Below are positions 46,866 through 62,013 of a DNA stretch of 64,000 nt, in pieces (position 1 is the stretch's first letter; each line of letters starts with the position of its first letter). The notes beneath the pieces are model-generated. The model saw only the letters and a program-made list of their open reading frames with translations. It did not search any database and was not told the DNA's origin. Location: contig CP075494.1 of the NCBI GenBank assembly GCA_021613535.1, forward strand, positions 5,890,001 through 5,954,000. The letters are read 5' to 3'. The position numbers and the translations under genes were made by a program. The DNA comes from Adineta vaga (Eukaryota; Animalia; Rotifera).

Positions 46866-49484
46866 ATGGCTACTAATGAACCATTAAACACAGGACGATG
46901 AGATCTTCGTCCAAATGAAATTTTGGACAACAAAGAAAATATTCAACTCATCTGGCTCGATGCAAATATGGAGCAATCACAAGATTGTCTTCTTACTCAA
47001 ACAATGTTGATTGAACTCAATCCAGCTGTGCAGTTCTATTCAAATTTTAATCGATGTCTTGACTTGATCAAGTCTATCAAAGATGAACAAATCTTTCTCA
47101 TTGTTTCAGGTGCCTTTGCACGACGTGTACTTTCACAAACTCATCATCAACGAGTTCTCGTCGCTGTTTTTATTTTCTGTTCTAACAGTCAATATCATCA
47201 ACCATTAATGCAAGAATACAGTAAAATCGTTGGAATCTTCACTGATTAACAGACTTTATTAGAAGCTATTCGAGAAAAAATGGAACTCGTCGAAAAACAA
47301 ACAATAGCATTTAGTCTCTTCGATCAAAAACAAAAATCACTCAAAGATCTCTCCAAAGAATCAGCATCATTTCTATTACATCAAATGTTAGTGTTTGTTC
47401 TCAGACAAATGTCACAAGATCAACAAGCAAAACAACAAATGATTGACATGTGTCATGATTATTATAAAAACAATAAACGAGAATTAGAGAAAATTAAACA
47501 ATTCAAACGAACTTATTGTCGTGAACAAGCGATCGAATGGTATACAGATGAATGTTTTCTATATAAACTACTGAACAAAGCATTACGAACAAAAGATATT
47601 GAATTACTCTATACCTTTCGATTCTTCATCATCAACTTATGTTCAGCCACTGAAAACGAACGTCAACAACTGAAAGATAAAGAAGTTCTAACATTATATC
47701 GTGGAGCACAAATTCCAAGTGAAGAACTCGATAAACTCAAAGATAATGTTGGTAAAGTCATTTCAACAAATGGATTTCTATCCACATCAAGAAACATCAA
47801 TGCATCACTTAATTTTGTTCATGGAAACGTTGTATCAAATGACTTTCGATCTGTTCTATTTGAGATTAAAGCTGATCTATCAATGAAGAATATTATCTGT
47901 GCTGATGTGAAGGATAAGAGTCGAATTGATGGTGAAGAAGAAGTGTTGTTTAGTCTCAATTCTCTATTCAAAATTCACTCTGTTCACTTTGATTCGACAC
48001 TTCGGATGTGGAAAGTGCAATTGAACAGTACAGATGAAGGTGCAGAAAAAGTTCAAGAATATCTTGTGTTATCAAAACAACAACTAGAGGATTATTCACC
48101 GATCATCTATTTTGGTCGTCTTCTGTTGTATGACTTAGGTCAAGTGGATCGAGCAGAGAAATATTTCAAGATGTTGCTTCAATCACTTCCGTCTGATCAT
48201 CCTGATATTGCATCTGTTTACAATCATATTGGGATTGTAAACGATACAAAACGTGAATACAATTTGGCATTGAGGAACTATAAGATAGCCTATGACATGC
48301 GTCGAAAACAACTGCCACCAAATCATCCTCGTATAGCTGGTTCACTTAACAATATAAGTGATATTTATAGAGCAAAGGGCGATTATGACAAAGCACTTGA
48401 CTATTATCAAAAGGCATTGAAGATCTTTGAAATAAACTATCCAAATGATCATTTATCAAAGGCAATTACAATTGGAAATATTGGCAGAGTATACAGAGAT
48501 AAAGAAGATTTCGATACTGCTCTTACATATTTCTCTCGTGCACTTGAGATGTTTAAACGTGTCCTTCCTAATCAAAATAGTAACATAGCACCATGTCTCG
48601 GTGCAATTGGATACGCTCATAAGAAGAAAGGTGATTTAGATGTTGCTCTCGATTATTATCAACAACAGCTAAATATGGAAGAACAATGTCTACCTTTTGA
48701 TCATCCAGATCTTTCAGATCATCTTGGCTGGATCATTGATACATACAAACAGATGAATGAGATTGAAAAAGCGTTAGAATTTTGTCAAGAAAATCTGATT
48801 GTTCAAAAAGATAGATTAGGTGAAAATCATCTTCGTGTTGCTCGAACCTTGATGATCATGGGTGATCTGATCGAGGACAATGATCCAAATGGAGCATTGC
48901 AACACTACGAAGAAGCTCTCTCTATTCTGCAAAACTATAAACCGCTTGATTATGCAGCCGTTGCTGAATGTCTCATTGAATTGGGCTGTTTGTATACTGA
49001 TCATGATATGATGGAAGATGCATTACGATGCGAACACGAAGCACTTAATTTTCGTCGCCAGATATTTCCAAGCGACCATGTCACAATTGCTTTTAACTTG
49101 AGAAATATTGGCTTGTCTTACGAAGAAATGAACAATCCATCTGAAGCACTACGTTATTTCAGCGAAAGTCTCTCGATTTATCGAGCTAATTATGGACCTG
49201 ATCATAAAGATGTGAAAAGAGGCGAAGAAGACATAGCAAGATTAAATAACAAAGATTTATTACCATCATATCATGAAGAGCAACAACAAGAAAATATCAA
49301 AGACAAAGAATATTGTTCAGTCTCTGATTCGTCTAATGTTCATCAACCAACATCTACTACCGATTCTATCCTTGAGACTCTCTCAGATCAGTCCAACTCA
49401 AATAAAACTCCTGCAACTGTTCAAAGTAAAACATGTATAATTCAAAGATCATTGGATTTGTTAATCTTTCTTTCGATCTTATAA
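46866..49484 (+). pseudogene. Receiver-like + ART + TPR paralog with two in-frame stops in the N-terminal domain (intact 734 aa ORF from 47280)
   Basis: One frame runs from ATG 46866 with TGA at 46899 and TAA at 47247. It is collinear with 29995-32457. ART motifs LYRG, FLSTS and EEEVLF are intact. Confidence 0.8.
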
Positions 49485-49962: not shown

Positions 49963-52900
49963 TTAAAGATCATCCCCATCAAATTTTGCCAATGGTGCAT
50001 CACGAGTTTTATTCATTGAATCAAATATTGTTGTTATTTCATTTTTCATTGTCTCGTTTTCATCTTCATTTACTTTTTTATTATCAATTCCAGCTACCTT
50101 ACGAAATGAAGACCACATGAAATCCATCATTTCATTCTTTTGTTGTGATGCCGCTAATTCTCGTTTAACATGTGCAAAGGAATCATTTAAACTAGAAAGA
50201 AGAAGTTTATCTTTATTTTTCTAATACAGCTTCAAGTACTTACATGGTCAAGAAGATGCTTAATAGTGCAATAAAGACAAGAATAATAAATGATACAAAA
50301 TAGAATGTACCTACATAGAAAATATGAATTCATTTGACATTCCTGTCTTTTTTTGTTACCTACCATAAAGACGACTGACAGCGAACATATCCGGTGCATT
50401 GATTTCACCCAAAAGCATTCGAAAGCAAGTTGTTAGTGCAGTAAAAAAGCTCTTATAGGATTCAAGTGAACGACCAAACACAGCAAAGCCCATCACTGCA
50501 TAAGCAATCATAAATATCAAGAAAACGAATCCAAATGAACTTAAATCTTGTCGAGCATAATGAAGTGATTTTGATAACATTCCAATACGTTTATTAAATC
50601 GAAGTAATTTTAAGAATTTCAACATAGTAAAGAATGTGATTAAAGCAACAATATATGAATATACTTCATCAAAACTTGCAATAGCATTAAAATTAACGAA
50701 GGCACCTAAAGAAAATTAAGATTAATCCTGTATCTTAATTTTTAGAAAGATAAACTTACCCATTTCAGTCTTTCTTAATGAACGAATAGCTAATCTTGTT
50801 AATGTTTTCTTTGTTCCATACATGATAATTGCTGTGATACTAAAGACTGTTGTAATAAATGAAATTACATTCCAAAATTTATGAAAATAAGCTCGTTTTT
50901 GTTTGATAAGTAATAATAATTCATGAATTGTTGAATAAATTGTAAAAATCACAAATAAAAGTTCAAATATATACACTAATATACCATAACCACCGATATG
51001 ATCATATAATCGAAAGATTTTGATTTGATGATCTTGAATAACTGAGCCCATCGATGTCATTTCAAATGATAGTGTTACAGCAACAAAAAGATTGACATTT
51101 GCATTATAAAGTGAAAAGTCAATAATAACTGCACGTGTCAATTGATCCAGCCAATTTAATGAACGAAGTTCTTCAAGAACTGCTCGACTTTTTTCATAAG
51201 TTCGACCTAATGAAACAATATAACCACCACCTTTATATGTTTTATAAAGTGCTTTCATAGGTCCACTCTTTGTACGAGCACTACTCTAAAAACAAAACAA
51301 CAAAGAAAAAAAAACTTAGAATCAATAGATGAATGGAATCTTACTTGATAACACCATGGTGTTTGACACCGTTTTGTTCCATTCTTATTTGCATCACTCA
51401 TTCTTGCTTCTTCTTTTGTTAAAACTGTTTTCCAACTTGGTGTATAATGTTTTGTATCATCATCAAACCAATTGTAATCATCTCGACAATGTGTTATAAT
51501 ATGTTTAACACGACGATGTACTCGACAACTATTTTCTTTAACACGTAATTGTCGTATTCGTGGTGCACCCACCCGCATTGAAACACGACTTCCTGTTGTT
51601 AATTTTTCTCTCCAAGTTAAATTTTTATCATTATACCATGTTTGTGCATAGAGTCCTTTCAATAAAACATCATCACAATATTTCCACCATGTATTTATCG
51701 AACCAACATCATGAAAATCATCGGTAATAAAGAGATTTTTTGTATCACGATATAAACCATATGAATTTGTATCTCTTGCTTGATAGGAAAGAAATAATAA
51801 AACAATAGTGAAGAATACATAAATAACGATTTCACGTATGATTTCACCCATTTTGATTTCTTGTAAACGTTGTGCACGTGCACGAGACATTTCAGTTGAA
51901 TCAATTGGTCGTAAATCAAATAATCGTACACGACGTTGTCGGGCAATATCTAATATTACAAAACAAAATCGTTTTGTTTTATTTCATTCCTCAAAATGAA
52001 CTTTTACCTTTCACTTTCATATCATTACAAGTTTCTTCGCCCTCTTTTTCTGGAATATTATTATTAGAAACTAATGCACCCGTGAATGGATCATTGAAAT
52101 CCAATGTTTCATCATCATATGGTCGACGAATAAGAAAACTAATAATAGCTGTAATAAGAAAGACTTTCAATGGATCAATAACAAGAATTGATTGACCAAA
52201 TGAAAGTATCATAGTAATTAACCATTCATTGGCTCGTTTTGCTCCCCATTCTAATGAATAGAGGATTATGAAGAATGAACATGTTAAAATACTCAATGTA
52301 ACCACTAGAAAACAAATGAATAGAATGAAGGAAGAAACTTTTCTTTATTGATCTTACATCCCCATGCGATATAAACCGTCCAATGTGGAAATGTTCTTGT
52401 TTTATCTTCAATGGAAGGTATAGCTCCGATACGTTCTAAACTTTCATCATCTATTGTTTTTGAATGTGTCAGACGATATTTTCCTCTTGAGAAGAATCTA
52501 AATAGATTCAAATATGAATTATTAAAGAAAAATAAAACACACAGACCTTGATGTTTCTTGATATTGTTCATCTTTTTCATCTAATTTATTTCGTCGTTTA
52601 CTTTCTTTCAATTGATGTCTTACTAATGCCTTTTGACTATATTTTGCTTTTCGAAATAAAGTAACAACAAATAAATTCACTGGTAGAACGATTAATGTAC
52701 CAATAAAACTAATCCAAAGTTGTGTCAGAGTAAATTGAATTGGTCCAATCTTCATCAAAACACCAGCTTTAGTTCCGGTTGCTTGCGTATCTTGCCGATA
52801 GAACATGGCATTAGATATCATTGTACAAAATAGTAATGATATACAACATGAAATACGTTGTAAACGAGTGAAATTACTTCGTACGGGTCGTGAAAAAACG

Positions 52901-55900
52901 GAAAACCATAGATGACCATCACTGAATTTCTTCTTAACAGATTGAGTAAATAAATGAGCAAAACTTTTCAATTCTTTTGCAGTTGCTAATGGAACAACAC
53001 GATCAACAAGTCCATCACCTTTTTCCACAGCAAGCCAATTGTCACAAATGAAGTAATTTCTTTGAAAGGAAAAAGAAAATTTAAATTAAAAAGTAAACGT
53101 GTCATTTTTTCCTTTACTTTTCCCCAGTTTGTAGATCTAAAACATTGATCATATTCAAATACCATGATGCTTTTGTTTTAAAACCAGAATTGTCATGCCA
53201 TACACGAAGGTAAAGTAATGGGCCGAGTGGAACTTCTACACTCATAACGAAATTTCGGACACTGCCAGATTTGAATTCCTGGAAAGAGGAGAAGAAAACA
53301 TTTTTGTTCTCGTCCAAAAATAATTGTATCGACGTTTTTTAATAGATTAGAAGAAAAAATAAAGGAACTTCTCCATTTACCAATTCAAATGGTTCGCACA
53401 CATCCTACTCGTATCATTAAATATGCCATTGCAGTTCTTGCTTTTGGTGTTATGACTTATTTTATCGTTACTTGTGTTCGATTATATTTCTGTAAATTAA
53501 TTCTTGAATTTCTAATCAACGAAATCCCTCATTATGCTTTTATTTCTCTTTCTAGCTTATCCAACACAAACACGAGTATCAATACGATTAAATCGTTCAC
53601 AATTATTTCCTGCTGTAACTATCTGTAGTGGAAATCCAGTTCGATATGATAAATATCTCATGCCTTTAATTGCTTATATTCAAGCAAATAATCTTTCAGC
53701 TTCACCTCCAAATATAACACGAAATGATATTTATTACAAAGCATTTAATTATATGATTGATCTATTCAATAAGAATAAAACTGATCAAGCAATGTCGTAC
53801 GGATTTCGATTAGAAGATATTCTACTCGATTGTAAATATAATGGATATGATTGCGAATCAATGTGGACAGAAACAATCTCACCAGTGTTAGGAAATTGTT
53901 ATACATTTAATCGACAAACAATCGATAAGAAAACAAATCTTTTTCAAATAAATCATGTTAACGGACGAACACAAAGTTTACACAGTGGTCTTATCATGAC
54001 ATTTTATTTAAATATTGAATTATATTTTCCATTATTAGAATACGGACTTGGTTTAACCGGTATTCTCCATCATTCCAATGAACAACCATTGATTCGATAT
54101 GCTGGAAAACGTTTTTCACCAGGTTTTGAACATACATTAGTATATGAAAAATCTGTTTCAACGTATCTTGGTTCACCATACTCATCATGTACAAACGATA
54201 TTCGAGATGATATGAAAGCATTATATAGTTATTTTGATAATAATACGGAATATATTTATTCCGAAACAGTTTGTTTGGAATTATGTCAACAAGAATTTAT
54301 GTATGAACAATGTGGATGTATTTATCCAGTTTATTTCTATTTAAATTATGTAAGAAAATGGTCTACTGATCAGATTTTTGTTGAATCAAATTTGTTTTTA
54401 GTTAATTATCGATGGACAATTACGATGGGTTCGAATATGTACACCATGGACAACAGAATATCAATGTACTATTCAAGCTCGATTTCATATCGCTAATAAT
54501 CCAAATCTGCAAGAACAACGATGTCCACATTGTCAATCACAATGTACGATTTATAAATATTCCAGTGATTTATCATCATTAAAAGGACCAAGTGATTCAC
54601 AAAAAGATTATTATAAGATGATGATACTATCCAATTCAACCATTCCAGTTAGACCAGATTTTCCGATGAATTCAAGTTATTATTTAGATCGAAATTATTT
54701 GAAATTATCAATTGTATCTTTGAATCCATATGAAATTGTCTACGAAGAGAAACCAACTTATTTATGGTCAGCATTTATATCTGATCTTGGTGGACAAAGT
54801 GGTTTGTAAGTGAAACAAATTCAAAGAAAGAAAAAAGAAGAAGTGAATATCATGTTTCTTTGATTTAGATGGTTGGGTCTTAGTGTCATCAGTATTCTTG
54901 GCGTAATGGAATATGTATATAAAAAAGCGCATGTTATTCGATTACAACGAAAGACAAAATGTGACGTTCAAGCATTTGAAAAAGAAGTCGAAACTGTTGC
55001 CGATGAAAGATTATAAATCATAAACTTACTTGATTTTTTCCATCTGTTAATTTTCTAACACCACTATCTGATGCTTCACCCGACATAACGAAACTAATAT
55101 TTGATGTTGTACTCGCTTCTTTTCCAACACCCGTATGAACTGTAATTAAATAATGATAACTATCAATAGGAAGGTTATCAACAAGTGGCGCAGCTGTCCA
55201 CTAAAAATAAATTTTTTGAAAAATAGTTCAATTTTTATTGCATCGAACTTACTTTAACCAAATCTTGCCTATCTTTTCGTCTTGCCCAAATTGCTGCAAT
55301 GACATATAAACCAAAGATTACAATAACTGTACTGAATACAGCAGCATTTTCATGTAATGTTTTAAATTTTGTAAAAACTGTTTTAAAATCAATAGTATTG
55401 GGTGGAACATAGAAATCACTACCAAAGGTTGTCAAATGTGTGCAAAGACATTCTGTTGATTTCAATATTGTTAAAGAGCCAACCTAGAAGAAGAAAATAA
55501 TAACAACATTGATGAATTAATTCTAGGAGAAAATAAATTTACTTCGCATCCATCAGAACTCCATACATATCGTTTTTCGTCCCAGTATTGACATTTTGAT
55601 ACATACATATTTACTGTATAACTTGAATTGTATTCAGTTAAATTCATTCGTGTACTTGCATCTAAAATTTAATCAATAACATCAAAACAATTCTTTCCTT
55701 TCAACATTAAGAAATACATACTTAGTAATCGAACGCCAAAAATGTAAGTTCCATTACCCTTATGAACACTTGGTGGCATGAAAATTGTATGTCTAATTTC
55801 ATGTTCATCAGCTGCATTCACATCACTTAGAGCTGTTCGATTCGGTAAAACAAATAACATGTCAAATTTCGATTCTGTTGGTGGTTCTAATAAAGTTTCA

Positions 55901-58900
55901 TTTTCTCCAAAAGAAACATAAACAGCATAAATATCCATTGGTGAATCATTTGGAGCAACATAGATGGATAAAGTCATATGTTTTTCTGGCAGAGTGACTT
56001 TGTGATAACGAAATGTGGTACCATGTGATTCATGAATTTGATATTTGGGTTGTTTGTCAATTGGTCTTGATAGGCGAATGGCAATTGGTTTGGTTGTATT
56101 TTGTACAGGCATTTCAGATCCGTCAGGTCGTGAAAGAATGATAGTAACAACACTGCCTTGAACACCAGTATTACCATTTGCACTTGCATATGGATTTTCT
56201 TTTGATTCGAGTACTTTCGTGAATACATTTGAACCACCAGAATCAGAATTTAAATCATTGAAACTGGGAAGACGGATATTTGTATCACCAGCAGATAAAC
56301 TTGAATGACCTTGTATTTAAGAGAAAAAACAACAAAATTTAATTGAGAAACGTTTTCATGAGATAAGATGCATACCATCAGGAGATGCTTTAGTAAAAGT
56401 CATTGCCATTGATTTACTTTCGATGGTTTTTGCTTCATCACCTGATGAACGATTTGTTAGAACATCACCAACTGTAAATAAGCCAGTAGCACTTCGTTTA
56501 GCAATACGTGAAGCCTATTAAAAACAAAAATTGAAGAAAAAAAAACACGAAAAATAAGTAAACGTTCATACTCGTTCTCTTCCTTTGATAATGGTTTTCT
56601 TTTCTTCTTCTAATTTCAATCGATATGCTTCCCATCGTTCTTCAGGTAAAGTATCACATTCATCACAATCATCATAAAATTTTGTTGGAGCATACAAAAC
56701 TTTCGTGTCTATTTCTTCTTCCCCTTCTTCTTCTTCTTCGTTTGTTGCAGGTTGTTTCATTTCTGCTTCAAGACTCTATATGTTGTAGCGAAGAATACAT
56801 TATTTGATTAAGATAAATAGTTTTACTTACTTCAATGACAGCAGTAGGATCGTTGTCTCTATTTTTCGAAACGGTTTTTGATGCAGCTTGAAGAACATTA
56901 CCACCAACATCCATCAATGCTAGAAATCAATCACATATTTTCGAATGAAAATGAAATGAAATGAAAATACATACATGAGGCTAAACCAGTAACTGTATTA
57001 TCATCAGCTGATTCCATACCTTTCACTTTATTTCCAACTTTTTCAATAATATCAGCACCTTTTTCCTACAATTCAAAATTTTATATTCAAATTAAATGAA
57101 AATAAAACGAATCAAACTTGATTATTCAATGGCATTTGATCACTATTTGCTGTCACTGTTGTACTAGCTTTCAATACTTTATCGACCATATTCGGGTCAT
57201 TTGATCCTTCAATTACTGTATCCATTGATGATAACATTTTTGATCGCATCTAAATTTTATATTACTTCCTATTTGTTTCGTTACAAATCTCAGCATACTT
57301 ACAGATGCCATTCGTCCATTCATTGCTTCTCGATCAGCATCACTTATTTCACCAGTAGTCTATAGAAAGAAAAGCATATTATTATTTTCTATCCAAAAGA
57401 GCAATTACTTACAGAATTATCACTCATTTCATTAAGTTTATCAGCAAGACTTGAAATTAATTCCACTGCTTTCTTTGGATTAGTTGCTGCTAAATTTTCT
57501 AAATTACCCATTGCCTCTTCTAATAAACTTAAATCTTCTGTTTCAAAAACAATCTTCATTTGTTTTTCAACTTCCAAACGTGCAATCAATTGTCGTCCAT
57601 CAGTCAAATGACGAACAATCAATAGAAAATGAAGTGTACCATTACTAAAATCTAAATCTTGTTCACTAATATTGAATGTTTTTGTTATTGGATCGAATTG
57701 AATCACTGATTTATTTTTCGTTTGTTTTGGATTTGATAAAAGACAATGATTCTCATAAATTTGAATATTTAATTCCGAACGACGAGTAATTAATGTAAAA
57801 TTATTCCATTGAATTGACCAACTATTATGATTTTGTGAATTAGTTTCTGTCGGTCTTGTTGAACCGAGTTGAAGTGTATCGGGAATGAAAATAGATGATT
57901 GTAATTCTGCTGGATAACATAGTAATGTAAAATTAACTTTTCGACGATCAAATTCTTTCGTATCTGGATCACTTGTTGAAGAATAGAAATCTAATTGAAG
58001 TGTATCATGATCATTTGTCAATGTATCATTTCCACCGAAGGTTGTTTCTAAATTCGAACGAATAATTTCAATTGGTTGAATGAATTGTCGAAAATCGGAT
58101 GGATTTGTACTGACACTAACAGTAAAAACAGCGATATAATATCCATGTGAAAGAGATTTTGGTTCGATGATTAATGTCGATTTTGGACCAATTTCTGAAC
58201 AATCTTTCGAAAGATATGTGTCTTGAAAGGATTGATACATTGAATGAGAATATCGTTGTGAACGTGAATATTTCCATTGAGATGGATCAACGGATAGAAG
58301 ATAAAATGAATAACTAAAATCATTTTCTGAACAATTACTAAGAATTGTTGGTTCAAGATTGTGTTGAAGAGTATAAGGAAGAAGTAATACAGGTGAAGTT
58401 GATGTGATATTATTAAAAGCATTAGGAGAACTAAGAGAAAGTTGTTGTTCAGGAAAGCATGTTTCTTCCGGTTGAGTAATACCATTGACAATAGTTATTG
58501 TTGGACATTTGATTTCAATAGTAAGAAGTTTAGATGATGGTTGAGTAAATGTTACATCGATTTTATATGTACCAGCTTTGTTAAATCTAGAAAAACGAAG
58601 TATTATTATTGATATTTCGTATTCTAATGAATATATAAAACATTCTCTCTTACTTATATCCAACTTGCAATCGTTGTTTAGAAAGACGTTTCCATTGTAT
58701 TTCATGTTCACCATCATTTTTCTTTATTATACGATTCATTTGACTTGCCATAATTTGTCCATAACGAATTGAAACTTTCTTTACATTTCCATAATCAACT
58801 TGAATATCAAAACCAATACCATTGATCCATTGAATATCTACCCAAACAAAATCTTCATTAACAAAAGCAATTTGATTTACAACATAAACTTGTGGCTTAA

Positions 58901-61900
58901 CGGTTATATCCGTTCCAATGGTAAATGTTGTTTGTGCTTCACGTATTGTTGGAAAATCACCACCACGAACATGTAATGTTTGTCTACCATATGTTGTTAT
59001 ATTCATATAGAATTGTTCAGTGAAATCATTTGATGATAATAATTGTATACGTTCAGTACGTGTTTGATTTTTTTCATTAATACTTGTACTATCTACAATA
59101 GTTAATGTAAATATACCTTCGAATGGAATACGTTCTAATGCATGAATAGTAACCGATGTTAATTGATTAATATCATGACGATCTTCGATTTCCACTTTAA
59201 ATGGTGATAATGGTTCTTCAACATCAATACGAATAGATTGATTGACTAAATTAATACGATTAATTGCACTAACTAATGGTTGATATTGACCAGGTTTGGA
59301 ATAAGTACAATTAGCCACAACAATTGGTGACATGTCAGTTACATGTTGAATATGAATGATTTCTAAAGGAGCTGAAGGTGTATTGCAATCGAAAATAATG
59401 GTCAGATCAACAGTAGGTTCAAGAGTAATAGAAAATTGAATTGATTGACCACTTTTAATGATTGTTTGTGATGCTTCAATATCTAAGGATCGAACAGCTG
59501 GTTGAACATTAATGTAATAAGCTTGTAATGATACATTATCACATTCAAGTTGATACATATGTTTACCAACAGGTAATACCTAAATGGAAAGATTTGAATA
59601 TTATAATGTTATATTGATTAATGCACAAGTTGTATGAATAACTTACATCATTTGGAATAACTTCTAAACTTTTTCGTCTCCAAATTAATTTCATTTTATC
59701 ATCTGTAATCATATTTCTTAAATAAAGACAATTTGCATGTCGAAATGAATAATCTTCTTTGGAGATTAAGTTAAATCGACTTGCACTTCCTGTGTCCATT
59801 AAATTTTCATGAATAATCATCTTTTGATTCATTCTTTCTCGTCGAATTGTACGCGTTAGTTGTGTTGTATTTGTGCTACGATCATTGTAACAACGAGCTG
59901 TTACATTATATTGTCCATAACGAGTATAGTTCCGAGAGAAATAAGCTGTATAATATTGATGACGACTTGTACCATTTGTTTGATGATGTCCATCACCGTA
60001 ATCAACTGTACAATTGATTGGTATACTTCCTACAAAAGAATAAAAAGAAAATAAGAGAAAAGAAATGAATTGATGTGCAGATGGTAGTTTACCATATGTT
60101 TGTACGGTAAAGTTTTGAAATTTTTGACCATCACGATTATCAGGTGTGAAATGAACAAATTGTAATGGTAAATCTGTTTTGATATAAACAACATCAACAT
60201 AAACAGTACGATATTCAGCCATTTCATGATTAACAATTCGACGATAATCAGCACGAAATTGTACTTTCTTAGCACCTTCACTCTTCCATGAAAGATTGAC
60301 CTTTATTTTTCAAAAGAAATTATTCAAGAGAATCGTTTTTATTTTGAAATAAATCGAGAAACTTACAACACCAGGTGTAATGTAAATTTCATGTGAACTG
60401 TTTGTATTTGTATTTTCTTGTCCTTCGATATCACCATAGACAGTTAATGAAGCAAGATTTCGTTCATTTTTGATCAAAACTACGATTTCAACACCTTCAT
60501 TGATTTGAACACGCGTTCGACCATGATTAAGAAAACTCGAATCAGCCATACGAATTTCAAGACCTACAAGAATTTAAGCATACAATTCTGTCTTATAACA
60601 ATAGAATATAATATGTCTCGATTGAGAAAGCTATAACTTAGAATACATCGTAGAAAAACACACTGTAATGAGGTTATGAAACATTAGTTAGATACGTCGG
60701 TGGCCTTAAGAATTGATATGAAGAACTGTTATCGAAGTGCGATATAACTATTTCTCACTTTTTGCATTCCCTAAAGAATATATTCACGCATTGTACTTTT
60801 CACATCTATCTAACACTTCACTCTTACACTTAGATCGTAGTAACAATTAATACATACCAACTTCACTATCGATTAGATCAATAACGTTTGATACTGTTAA
60901 TACATGCCATTGTCCATTATTTCGACATGATTTACTTGGTTTTTCCAATGAACATTGACATTTAGTTATATGATCTTTAAATGCGGAATCGAATTCATAA
61001 GTACTTTGAATACATCCACAATGCTTATCTGAGGGTGAATAAAAAGCAATCTATTTAAAAAAGACGATCATGAGAGAAATTAAAAAGATCAATTGAAAAC
61101 AAACATTCATCTTTCGTCCATAACAGTCAGATCGACATTGTTGCCAATGATCATATTTTTCTGGAATGACATATTGATGAATTAAGTCAATTTCTTTTAA
61201 ACATTCCATTGATATACGATCCAATGGTACTAAATTCATAACATTAAATTTTATGTTTTTTTTGTTAATATATCAAAAAGAATACAAACCATTAGCAATT
61301 TCTTCTTCCGTTAAAGTTCGTTCATAGTAAACCATTTCATCGAATTTAATCAATCCTGTATCATTGGCATAGATCATAGCTTGTTTAGGATGTAATTCAC
61401 TGTATTTGAATGCAAACACTTCTGTATAATTTTCCATTTGTGTTTCTTTATAAAAATGTCCATCGAAAAAGATACTCATTTGATGATGTTGTCCAAATGT
61501 TGTAACACGTTGTTCAATAGTAACAACAACATCAATCCAATTGTTCACTTCTAAATCAGCTTCAACTTGCCAGAAATAAGCAAATTGATCATTTCGAAAT
61601 TCTTTTAAACCAAATTCTAAATACGATGTATTCTTTGATTGATAGAGATAAATAGACATGCCATCACCATGTGGTTCATGTGCACCGGTACTAAATACTA
61701 AAGATTTTCGTTCTCGATCAACAATTTGAAATGGATTGAGATATAATTTAAATCTTAATGACCATCCATGTGCTGAACATTGGGATAATTGTCGAAAACA
61801 ATTAAAATCTTCATTTGATAAACGATAGAATCCATCTGCATCAGATTTAGTTTGCGAACGATCAAGTAGAAGTTTTCCATCTAATGAAAAACAAAAATTC

Positions 61901-62013
61901 ATATATATATATGATTTCTAACGAATAGCTGAGGTAAACATACCTTCAACTTGAAGAGAATAATTTAATTGAATTAAGATTATAAATGAAACAAAAAACA
62001 CCGGGATTTTCAT
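49963..62013 (-). CDS. Polycystin-1-like protein (PKD1L family), >20 exons
   Basis: Signal peptide MKIPVFFVSFIILIQ, LamG-like exon, PKD-like repeats (VDYGDG) and REJ-like region. GPS CQYWDE..WSSDGC..CLCTHLTTFG, TM1, PLAT (YLITVHTG..LRVWHDNSG) and HLWFSV..SNFTRLQR. TOP domain (RIRQLRV, WLDQLTRAV) and channel TMs. Stop at 49963. Confidence 0.93.
53389..55016 (+). CDS. DEG/ENaC (ASIC-like) sodium channel subunit nested antisense in a polycystin intron, at least 4 exons
   Basis: TM1, then SYPTQT, FPAVTICSGNP, LGNCYTFN, G.RFSPGFEH, Cys-rich thumb and TM2 ISDLGGQSGLWLGLSVISIL. Introns 53492-53555, 54350-54401 and ~54806-54868. The true N-terminus may extend upstream of 53389. Confidence 0.92.

Follow-up and report, generated by a model that had tools for sequence, protein, structure and literature searches.

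Gene content of the locus

The 64,000-nucleotide (nt) stretch of Adineta vaga contig CP075494.1 analysed here (the window; AT-rich, GC content about 30%) carries on its minus strand a polycystin-1-like gene with an approximate extent of 50232–61902, mapped from open reading frames (ORFs), Pfam profiles and matches to polycystin chains, and one intron of this host gene contains the whole coding sequence (CDS) of a DEG/ENaC channel gene (hereafter the ENaC) on the opposite strand. The intron spans 53279–55029 (minus strand, 1751 nt, phase 0, GT..AG) and splits the host PLAT domain, while the ENaC CDS occupies 53389–55016 on the plus strand, leaving 110 nt between the host acceptor and its ATG and 13 nt between its stop codon and the host donor. 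A preliminary description of this DNA, made from the sequence alone, had given the same arrangement; its intron proved exact to the base, with the corresponding RNA joint found in two studies, the limits of the CDS and both gaps were likewise exact, and the two family names it proposed were correct by Pfam and motif matches. Proteins encoded in the window have their nearest named relatives in A. ricciae and A. steineri.

The limits of the intron were read from the two host exons that flank it, both on the minus strand. The upstream exon (55030–55200; RNA joints at 55029 and from 55200 to 55253, and translation) ends at 55030 with a complete codon (...LTDGKNQ) followed by gtaagt, and the downstream exon (53118–53278; RNA joints from 53059 to 53118 and across the 1751-nt intron) starts at 53278 (EFKSGSVRNF...) and is preceded by ...ccag; these exon ends with their splice signals therefore define the 1751-nt, phase-0 intron. 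The downstream exon represents the C-terminal half of PLAT, its segment 53120–53278 covering positions 44–92 of the 117 in the Pfam profile (E 1.5e-5), and the upstream exon, which by its translation looks like the N-terminal half, is too short to score in Pfam alone. The remaining mapped host introns (n = 10) are 49–66 nt each, which agrees with the earlier estimate of about 50–65 nt.

Domain order along the host is a ConA-like/Laminin_G_3 match (weak), a PKD domain, an REJ-like region, a GPS motif, a transmembrane (TM) segment, PLAT, a TM bundle, Polycystin_dom and PKD_channel. The ectodomain holds one PKD domain (Pfam 4.4e-5) and a GPS motif, CLCTHLTTFG, that falls under the Pfam cut-off (E 0.018), and the TM segment between GPS and PLAT is found in the ORF at 55235–55465. 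The C-terminal part matched Polycystin_dom (1.4e-26 and 1.1e-15) and PKD_channel (1.6e-17), and the host matched polycystin-2, PKD2L1 and PKD1L3 chains with a best value of 2e-25. The Pfam REJ domain gave no match on the 442-amino-acid (aa) and 219-aa host ORFs. With PLAT placed in the first cytosolic loop behind a GPS-containing ectodomain and a C-terminal polycystin domain with a channel-like bundle, the host is polycystin-1-like; relatives of it carry the JGI label 'polycystin 1L2'. It has in common with PKD1, PKD1L2/L3 and PKDREJ the order PKD domain, GPS, TM, PLAT, polycystin domain and channel-like C-terminal bundle, and differs from PKD1, PKD1L and PKDREJ proteins in that no REJ domain is detected by Pfam, the GPS motif is below threshold and the N-terminal ConA-like lectin match is weak.

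The nested ENaC consists of four exons encoding 482 aa without internal stop, separated by introns of 64, 52 and 63 nt, all GT..AG. Exon 1 (53389–53491, plus strand) runs from the ATG through a cytosolic N-terminus of about 11 aa and TM1 to a GT donor, and is spliced to 53556 in an RNA contig of run X10; its start codon is kept in orthologs. Exon 2 (53556–54349, plus strand) carries FPAVTICSGNP, the motif after TM1, together with most of the Cys-rich extracellular domain, and exon 3 (54402–54805, plus strand), placed by GT..AG signals and frame, holds the rest of this domain up to GGQSGL before TM2. Both exceeded the 23.6-bit cut-off of Pfam ASC (PF00858) over consecutive stretches of the profile (exon 2, positions 50–318, 6.1e-31, 108 bits; exon 3, positions 331–439, 3.2e-12). 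Exon 4 (54869–55016, plus strand), placed by frame and an AG acceptor, encodes TM2 (WLGLSVISILGVMEY) with G-L-S at the selectivity-filter position, the C-terminal tail and the TAA stop. The two TM segments and family motifs can be read directly from the translation as AIAVLAFGVMTYFIV, FPAVTICSGNP and DLGGQSGLWLGLSVISILGVMEY.

Exon 2 matched human ENaC and ASIC chains at values down to 4e-17, with FaNaC also among the PDB matches. Like human ENaC alpha/beta/gamma (6BQN, 6WTH), ASIC1 and FaNaC, the nested ENaC has an ASC extracellular match, two TMs, FPAVTxC, GGQSGL and G-x-S in TM2; unlike them it has an N-terminus of about 11 aa without the His-Gly gating motif, and its identity to these solved channels is only distant. 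The His-Gly motif is common in DEG/ENaC proteins but lies outside the Pfam definition of the family. The A. vaga protein lacks it, its N-terminus reading MVRTHPTRIIKY followed by TM1, and it is also absent from the ENaC orthologs and from two co-orthologs in Didymodactylos carnosus, so that the short N-terminus is old and reflects neither decay nor crowding.

The A. vaga genome has at least 30 DEG/ENaC loci, but none proved to be a homoeolog of the nested ENaC, the next best match reaching 45% identity. The nearest paralog (C5:4156198–4156977; L008:1075–2541, minus strand) has 39–45% aa identity, lies almost wholly in one 488-aa open frame and keeps the His-Gly motif as STHGL. A retrogene origin of the nested ENaC was considered and rejected, as the gene has three introns whereas this paralog is one long exon. 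Database searches used single ENaC exons or one listed ORF as queries, and the joined model was compared locally with fetched loci; no identical A. vaga ENaC protein was returned from the protein collection, and the nested gene may therefore be unannotated in A. vaga.

RNA and DNA evidence

Splicing and assembly were assessed with RNA contigs from two studies (runs X1 and X10) and with DNA contigs from 2013 (run X7). The X1 and X10 contigs lack the host introns and thus derive from spliced RNA. In both runs 53278 is joined to 55030 with exactly 1751 nt skipped (CT..AC ends on the plus strand), so the proposed splicing of the polycystin across this intron holds, and ten further host joints skip 49–66 nt each. 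The ENaC CDS accordingly lies wholly within one intron of a host that is spliced across it. X7 DNA covered all bins evenly, and its contigs 52863–53322 and 54366–55159 span both intron edges.

Transcription of the ENaC on its own strand was seen in a single X10 contig (depth about 3.7) from which ENaC intron 1 has been removed, joining 53491 to 53556; the letters 'CA' between the two sides of this joint are the start of exon 2 with a synonymous T>A at 53557. Removal of a plus-sense GT..AG intron is impossible from the host pre-mRNA and therefore demonstrates that an ENaC-sense transcript exists. Further low-depth RNA contigs (about 2–6) lie in the ENaC at 53848–54058 (X1) and 54879–55029 (X10). 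Introns 2 and 3 are based on splice signals, frame, profile continuity and the same junctions in the A. steineri protein P0002 (NCBI).

RNA contigs of much greater depth (51–140) were also retrieved, sharing just 22–27-nt words with the window at 56526–56547 and 52158–52184. These words are short low-complexity sharing, the contigs continuing into unrelated sequence, and they are no evidence of expression here.

Selection on the nested ENaC

The ratio of non-synonymous to synonymous substitution (dN/dS) was calculated from codon comparisons over about 397 codons. The A. vaga ENaC gave a value of 0.10 against A. ricciae and 0.21–0.23 against A. steineri, and three metagenomic orthologs gave 0.065–0.084 among themselves; dS between these three and A. 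vaga, A. ricciae or A. steineri was saturated. Eleven read variants were found in the ENaC CDS, comprising seven synonymous and four conservative changes and no stops. The nested ENaC is under purifying selection. The splice at intron 1 and these dN/dS values speak against an untranscribed ENaC with dN/dS near 1, which the preliminary description had named as a refuting outcome.

Conservation of the nesting in relatives

The order PLAT half, ENaC, PLAT half is repeated in A. ricciae (L021), where the gaps are 110 nt and 16 nt, and in three contigs of one metagenomic ENA assembly with a GC content of 46–48% (L023, L024 and L027). Identity of the host exon at 55030–55200 among relatives is 82–91%. 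The two D. carnosus co-orthologs are sister to the nested ENaC clade (clade support 100/99) and are unnested, with no host exons within several kilobases. Orthologs could not be identified in named bdelloids outside Adineta, such as Rotaria or Philodina. Apart from the Didymodactylos protein P0018 (51%), a single cluster in the representative search exceeded 50% identity, and the gene list of one further contig leaves no space for a nested gene.

The public annotation of A. ricciae cuts the host at the ENaC-bearing intron into a PLAT protein of 160 aa and a second protein of 1906 aa (L021:1–529 and L021:2224–8172).

L027 additionally has neighbouring methyltransferase and TPR genes in common with A. 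vaga. In the window the host is neighboured at 46923–49484 (plus strand) by a large single-exon ORF of 734 aa and a further ORF upstream, with numerous TPR repeats; the L027 counterpart, annotated TPR_12 and TPR_10, also adjoins the host, making it a conserved neighbour.

Loss of either partner

Intact hosts without an ENaC were found at four loci. The window corresponds to chromosome 5 of A. vaga (C5:5890001–5954000), which is homoeologous to chromosome 2 (PMC8494291), and the host homoeolog at C2:14.38 Mb is a complete gene, 62–94% identical piece by piece, with a 52-nt intron at the identical phase-0 site and no ENaC within 40 kb. L032, L033 and L034 likewise carry intact hosts with introns of 159, 56 and 165 nt at this site. 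L032 is colinear with the nested L023 (81–85% over exons and introns) apart from a stretch in which about 140 nt take the place of about 1.8 kb of L023, and the L032 intron retains three collinear blocks of the L023 intron, namely the donor, 25/28 positions in ENaC exon 1 and 27/33 in the 5' flank, the best of them scoring z 10.5 against shuffles. This colinearity and the relic blocks indicate that L032 lost its nested ENaC by secondary deletion. In the short introns of the C2 copy, L033 and L034 no ENaC relics rose above the shuffle controls, and only L032 was positive. On the question raised in the preliminary description, whether the nesting recurs at this PLAT intron, it does so in A. ricciae, L023, L024 and L027 and not in the C2 homoeolog, L032, L033 and L034.

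The opposite outcome is seen in A. steineri, where the ENaC ortholog, present in three assemblies and grouped with those of A. vaga and A. ricciae (94/94), sits between DENND11 and a YHYH gene. The only host sequence beside it consists of degenerate pieces that keep the expected order and orientation. On one side these are a frameshifted post-PLAT piece and a PLAT C-terminal half at about 60% identity, and on the other a 15-aa remnant of the PLAT N-terminal half. The ENaC is intact in two of the three assemblies (L019, L020). In the third (L022, GCA_905332015.1) a CAA>TAA change (Gln to stop) lies in exon 2 at L022:8918–8920 and a 1-nt deletion just before GGQSGL, near L022:9400. A fragment represented by P0211, 95% identical to the C2-type host, suggests that the other host homoeolog survives in this species.

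The NCBI protein P0008 avoids both L022 defects through invented introns. At L019:8194–8283, about 560 nt past the ENaC, there is a second fragment resembling the PLAT C-terminal half (63% over 30 aa), which suggests a partial duplication or rearrangement during host decay.

The host tree pairs L023 with L032 (100/100), so that nested hosts do not form one clade. One split separating nested from unnested hosts was rejected with all rows included (approximately unbiased test, p 3e-106), a result driven by the L023/L032 pair; without this pair the same test was borderline (p 0.035) and the deep nodes collapse. Coupling of the ENaC and the host is not obligate, because the C2, L032, L033 and L034 hosts lack the ENaC and the A. 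steineri ENaC outlives its host.

Boundaries of the ENaC within the intron

Between the ENaC stop and the host exon there are 13 nt in A. vaga, 16 nt in A. ricciae, 11 nt in L024 and 17 nt in L027, and in L023 the ENaC frame runs 21 nt beyond the host splice donor into the PLAT exon before reaching TAG (L023:4740–4760), which is a true CDS–CDS antisense overlap. The host exon at 55030–55200 is antisense to any ENaC 3' untranslated region (UTR) exceeding 13 nt. With 13 nt left after the stop and TATAAA at 55012 and CATAAA at 55019 near it, the ENaC mRNA would most likely end at the host PLAT exon or a few to some tens of nt into it, and a short antisense overlap of its 3' end with this exon is therefore likely.

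The 5' gap across nested loci ranges from 110 to 296 nt. No conserved promoter was seen in the 110-nt gap of A. vaga, which is 53% identical to that of A. ricciae, about the level of introns. This gap could hold a 5'UTR without host overlap. The preliminary description had maintained that the 3'UTR of the ENaC, and probably its promoter and 5'UTR, must overlap host coding exons; contact of the 3'UTR with the host exon is reasonable given the A. vaga spacing, the 11–17 nt in relatives and the L023 overlap, whereas overlap at the 5' end would not be required.

Interpretation of the nested pair

We consider it most likely that the locus, set in a compact bdelloid genome, is simply a nested gene pair of the ordinary antiparallel kind. 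The ENaC is an independent transcription unit with its own start codon, three short introns and stop, and would encode a constrained two-TM channel subunit expressed at a low level, its channel function being predicted from the translation. The nesting is old and probably arose in the ancestor of an Adineta-like clade; the Didymodactylos co-orthologs are unnested. Several lineages have since kept the pair, at least one host copy has had its ENaC deleted, and in A. steineri the host has decayed. The 'edge to edge' fit is probably due to deletion bias in a genome of introns of about 50–65 nt, which has left little of the host intron beyond what a functional ENaC minimally needs, with the 3' boundary fixed by the host splice donor, past which no further trimming would be possible. 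Antisense overlap would in that case be a tolerated by-product of crowding and no regulatory device.

Genes on the opposite strand within introns are common in animals. About 6% of Drosophila genes are intronic, and 2mit sits in intron 11 of Drosophila timeless2 (PMC3786989), LRRTM genes are nested in vertebrate alpha-catenin genes, a case in which the gain and loss of nesting has been traced (PMC3933685), and genes for TipE-like sodium-channel auxiliary subunits are stably kept inside a host intron in insects (PMC3240667). The 2mit/timeless2 and LRRTM/alpha-catenin pairs resemble the A. vaga locus in having a complete opposite-strand gene in one intron with the host spliced across it, and in long conservation with loss in some lineages. 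The A. vaga intron differs from both in being trimmed to the nested gene with 13 nt to spare at the 3' end, so that a short overlap with the host coding exon is almost unavoidable. The TipE cluster (PMC3240667) is alike in that channel-related genes are stably nested across many species; it is a cluster of auxiliary subunits, whereas here a single subunit of a pore-forming family lies inside another channel-family gene.

Several observations weigh against an ordinary nested pair as we have described it. The 11–17 nt spacing has persisted through saturated synonymous divergence, and selection on the overlap itself, in addition to crowding, could be responsible. ENaC expression amounts to a few contigs at depths of 2–6, with RNA support for one of the three introns. 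Because transcript ends are invisible in assembled contigs, the extent of the antisense overlap is an estimate. The broken ENaC of L022 is a further point, being compatible with loss of function once the host had died, and the collapse of the deep host-tree nodes means that the tree does not decide between loss and primary absence of the ENaC in the C2 copy.

A rival reading makes the nesting a regulatory device, with convergent transcription or double-stranded RNA between the ENaC 3' end and the PLAT exon coupling two sensory-channel genes; within the same cells, the two would then exclude each other or be expressed at a tuned ratio. We regard this as unlikely, and co-regulated or mutually exclusive expression in sensory cells, as the preliminary description suggested, is speculation. 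In its favour, the stop is held within 11–17 nt of the host exon in four diverged loci and overlaps by 21 nt in a fifth, the 3' spacing being tight whereas the 5' gap varies over 110–296 nt; runs X1 and X10 each contain RNA of both genes, and the A. steineri ENaC looks relaxed or broken where its host is dead (dN/dS 0.21–0.33; nonsense and frameshift in L022). Hosts nevertheless remain intact without the ENaC (C2, L032 with its deletion relics, L033, L034), the ENaC remains intact without a host in two of three A. steineri assemblies, and no conserved non-coding sequence occurs in the 5' flank. Tight 3' spacing would moreover be expected anyway from deletion bias acting against a boundary fixed by the host splice donor. 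It is a shade more doubtful still that the conserved abutment of stop and poly(A) on the host 5' splice site and PLAT exon is a selected antisense switch. If it were, ENaC transcription would modulate polycystin splicing or dosage in particular sensory cells, or the reverse, and the C5 copy would be regulated unlike its unnested C2 homoeolog, which would amount to subfunctionalisation after genome duplication.

Low RNA depth can also be read as noise-level transcription of an ENaC that is dispensable, has no present function and is on its way out in A. vaga too, as might be suspected from its repeated loss in related host copies, its breakage in one A. steineri assembly, the missing N-terminal His-Gly motif, which the nearest paralog clade possesses, and the lack of an identical protein in the protein collection. 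This is improbable, since the frame stays open over 482 aa and every splice site is canonical, the comparison with A. ricciae gives a dN/dS of 0.10 and within-species variants are mostly synonymous, the post-TM1 motif, GGQSGL and TM2 G-x-S are intact, and the short N-terminus recurs in the Didymodactylos co-orthologs and is hence old. Least credible, to the point of near dismissal, is an artefact of assembly or annotation, either a chimeric join or two polycystin fragments around an intergenic ENaC. The division of the annotated A. ricciae host into proteins of 160 and 1906 aa on either side of the ENaC would fit the latter, but RNA of two studies joins the PLAT halves in frame and unnested copies use the same phase-0 site with introns of 52–165 nt. 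An assembly chimera, named in the preliminary description as a possible source of error, is refuted by this RNA and by the 2013 DNA contigs over both edges.

In summary, the ordinary nested pair that we favour provides a clean example of nesting in an extremely compact animal genome. Because nested opposite-strand genes are common, the finding opens no new question beyond a lesson for annotation and a comparative series. The lesson is that the A. ricciae host was cut in two at this intron and that the A. vaga ENaC may be unannotated. The series is a natural one, comprising an intact pair, a nested gene deleted with relics and a host decayed around a surviving nested gene, and it could be used, on a small scale, to examine whether expression is constrained by antisense nesting.

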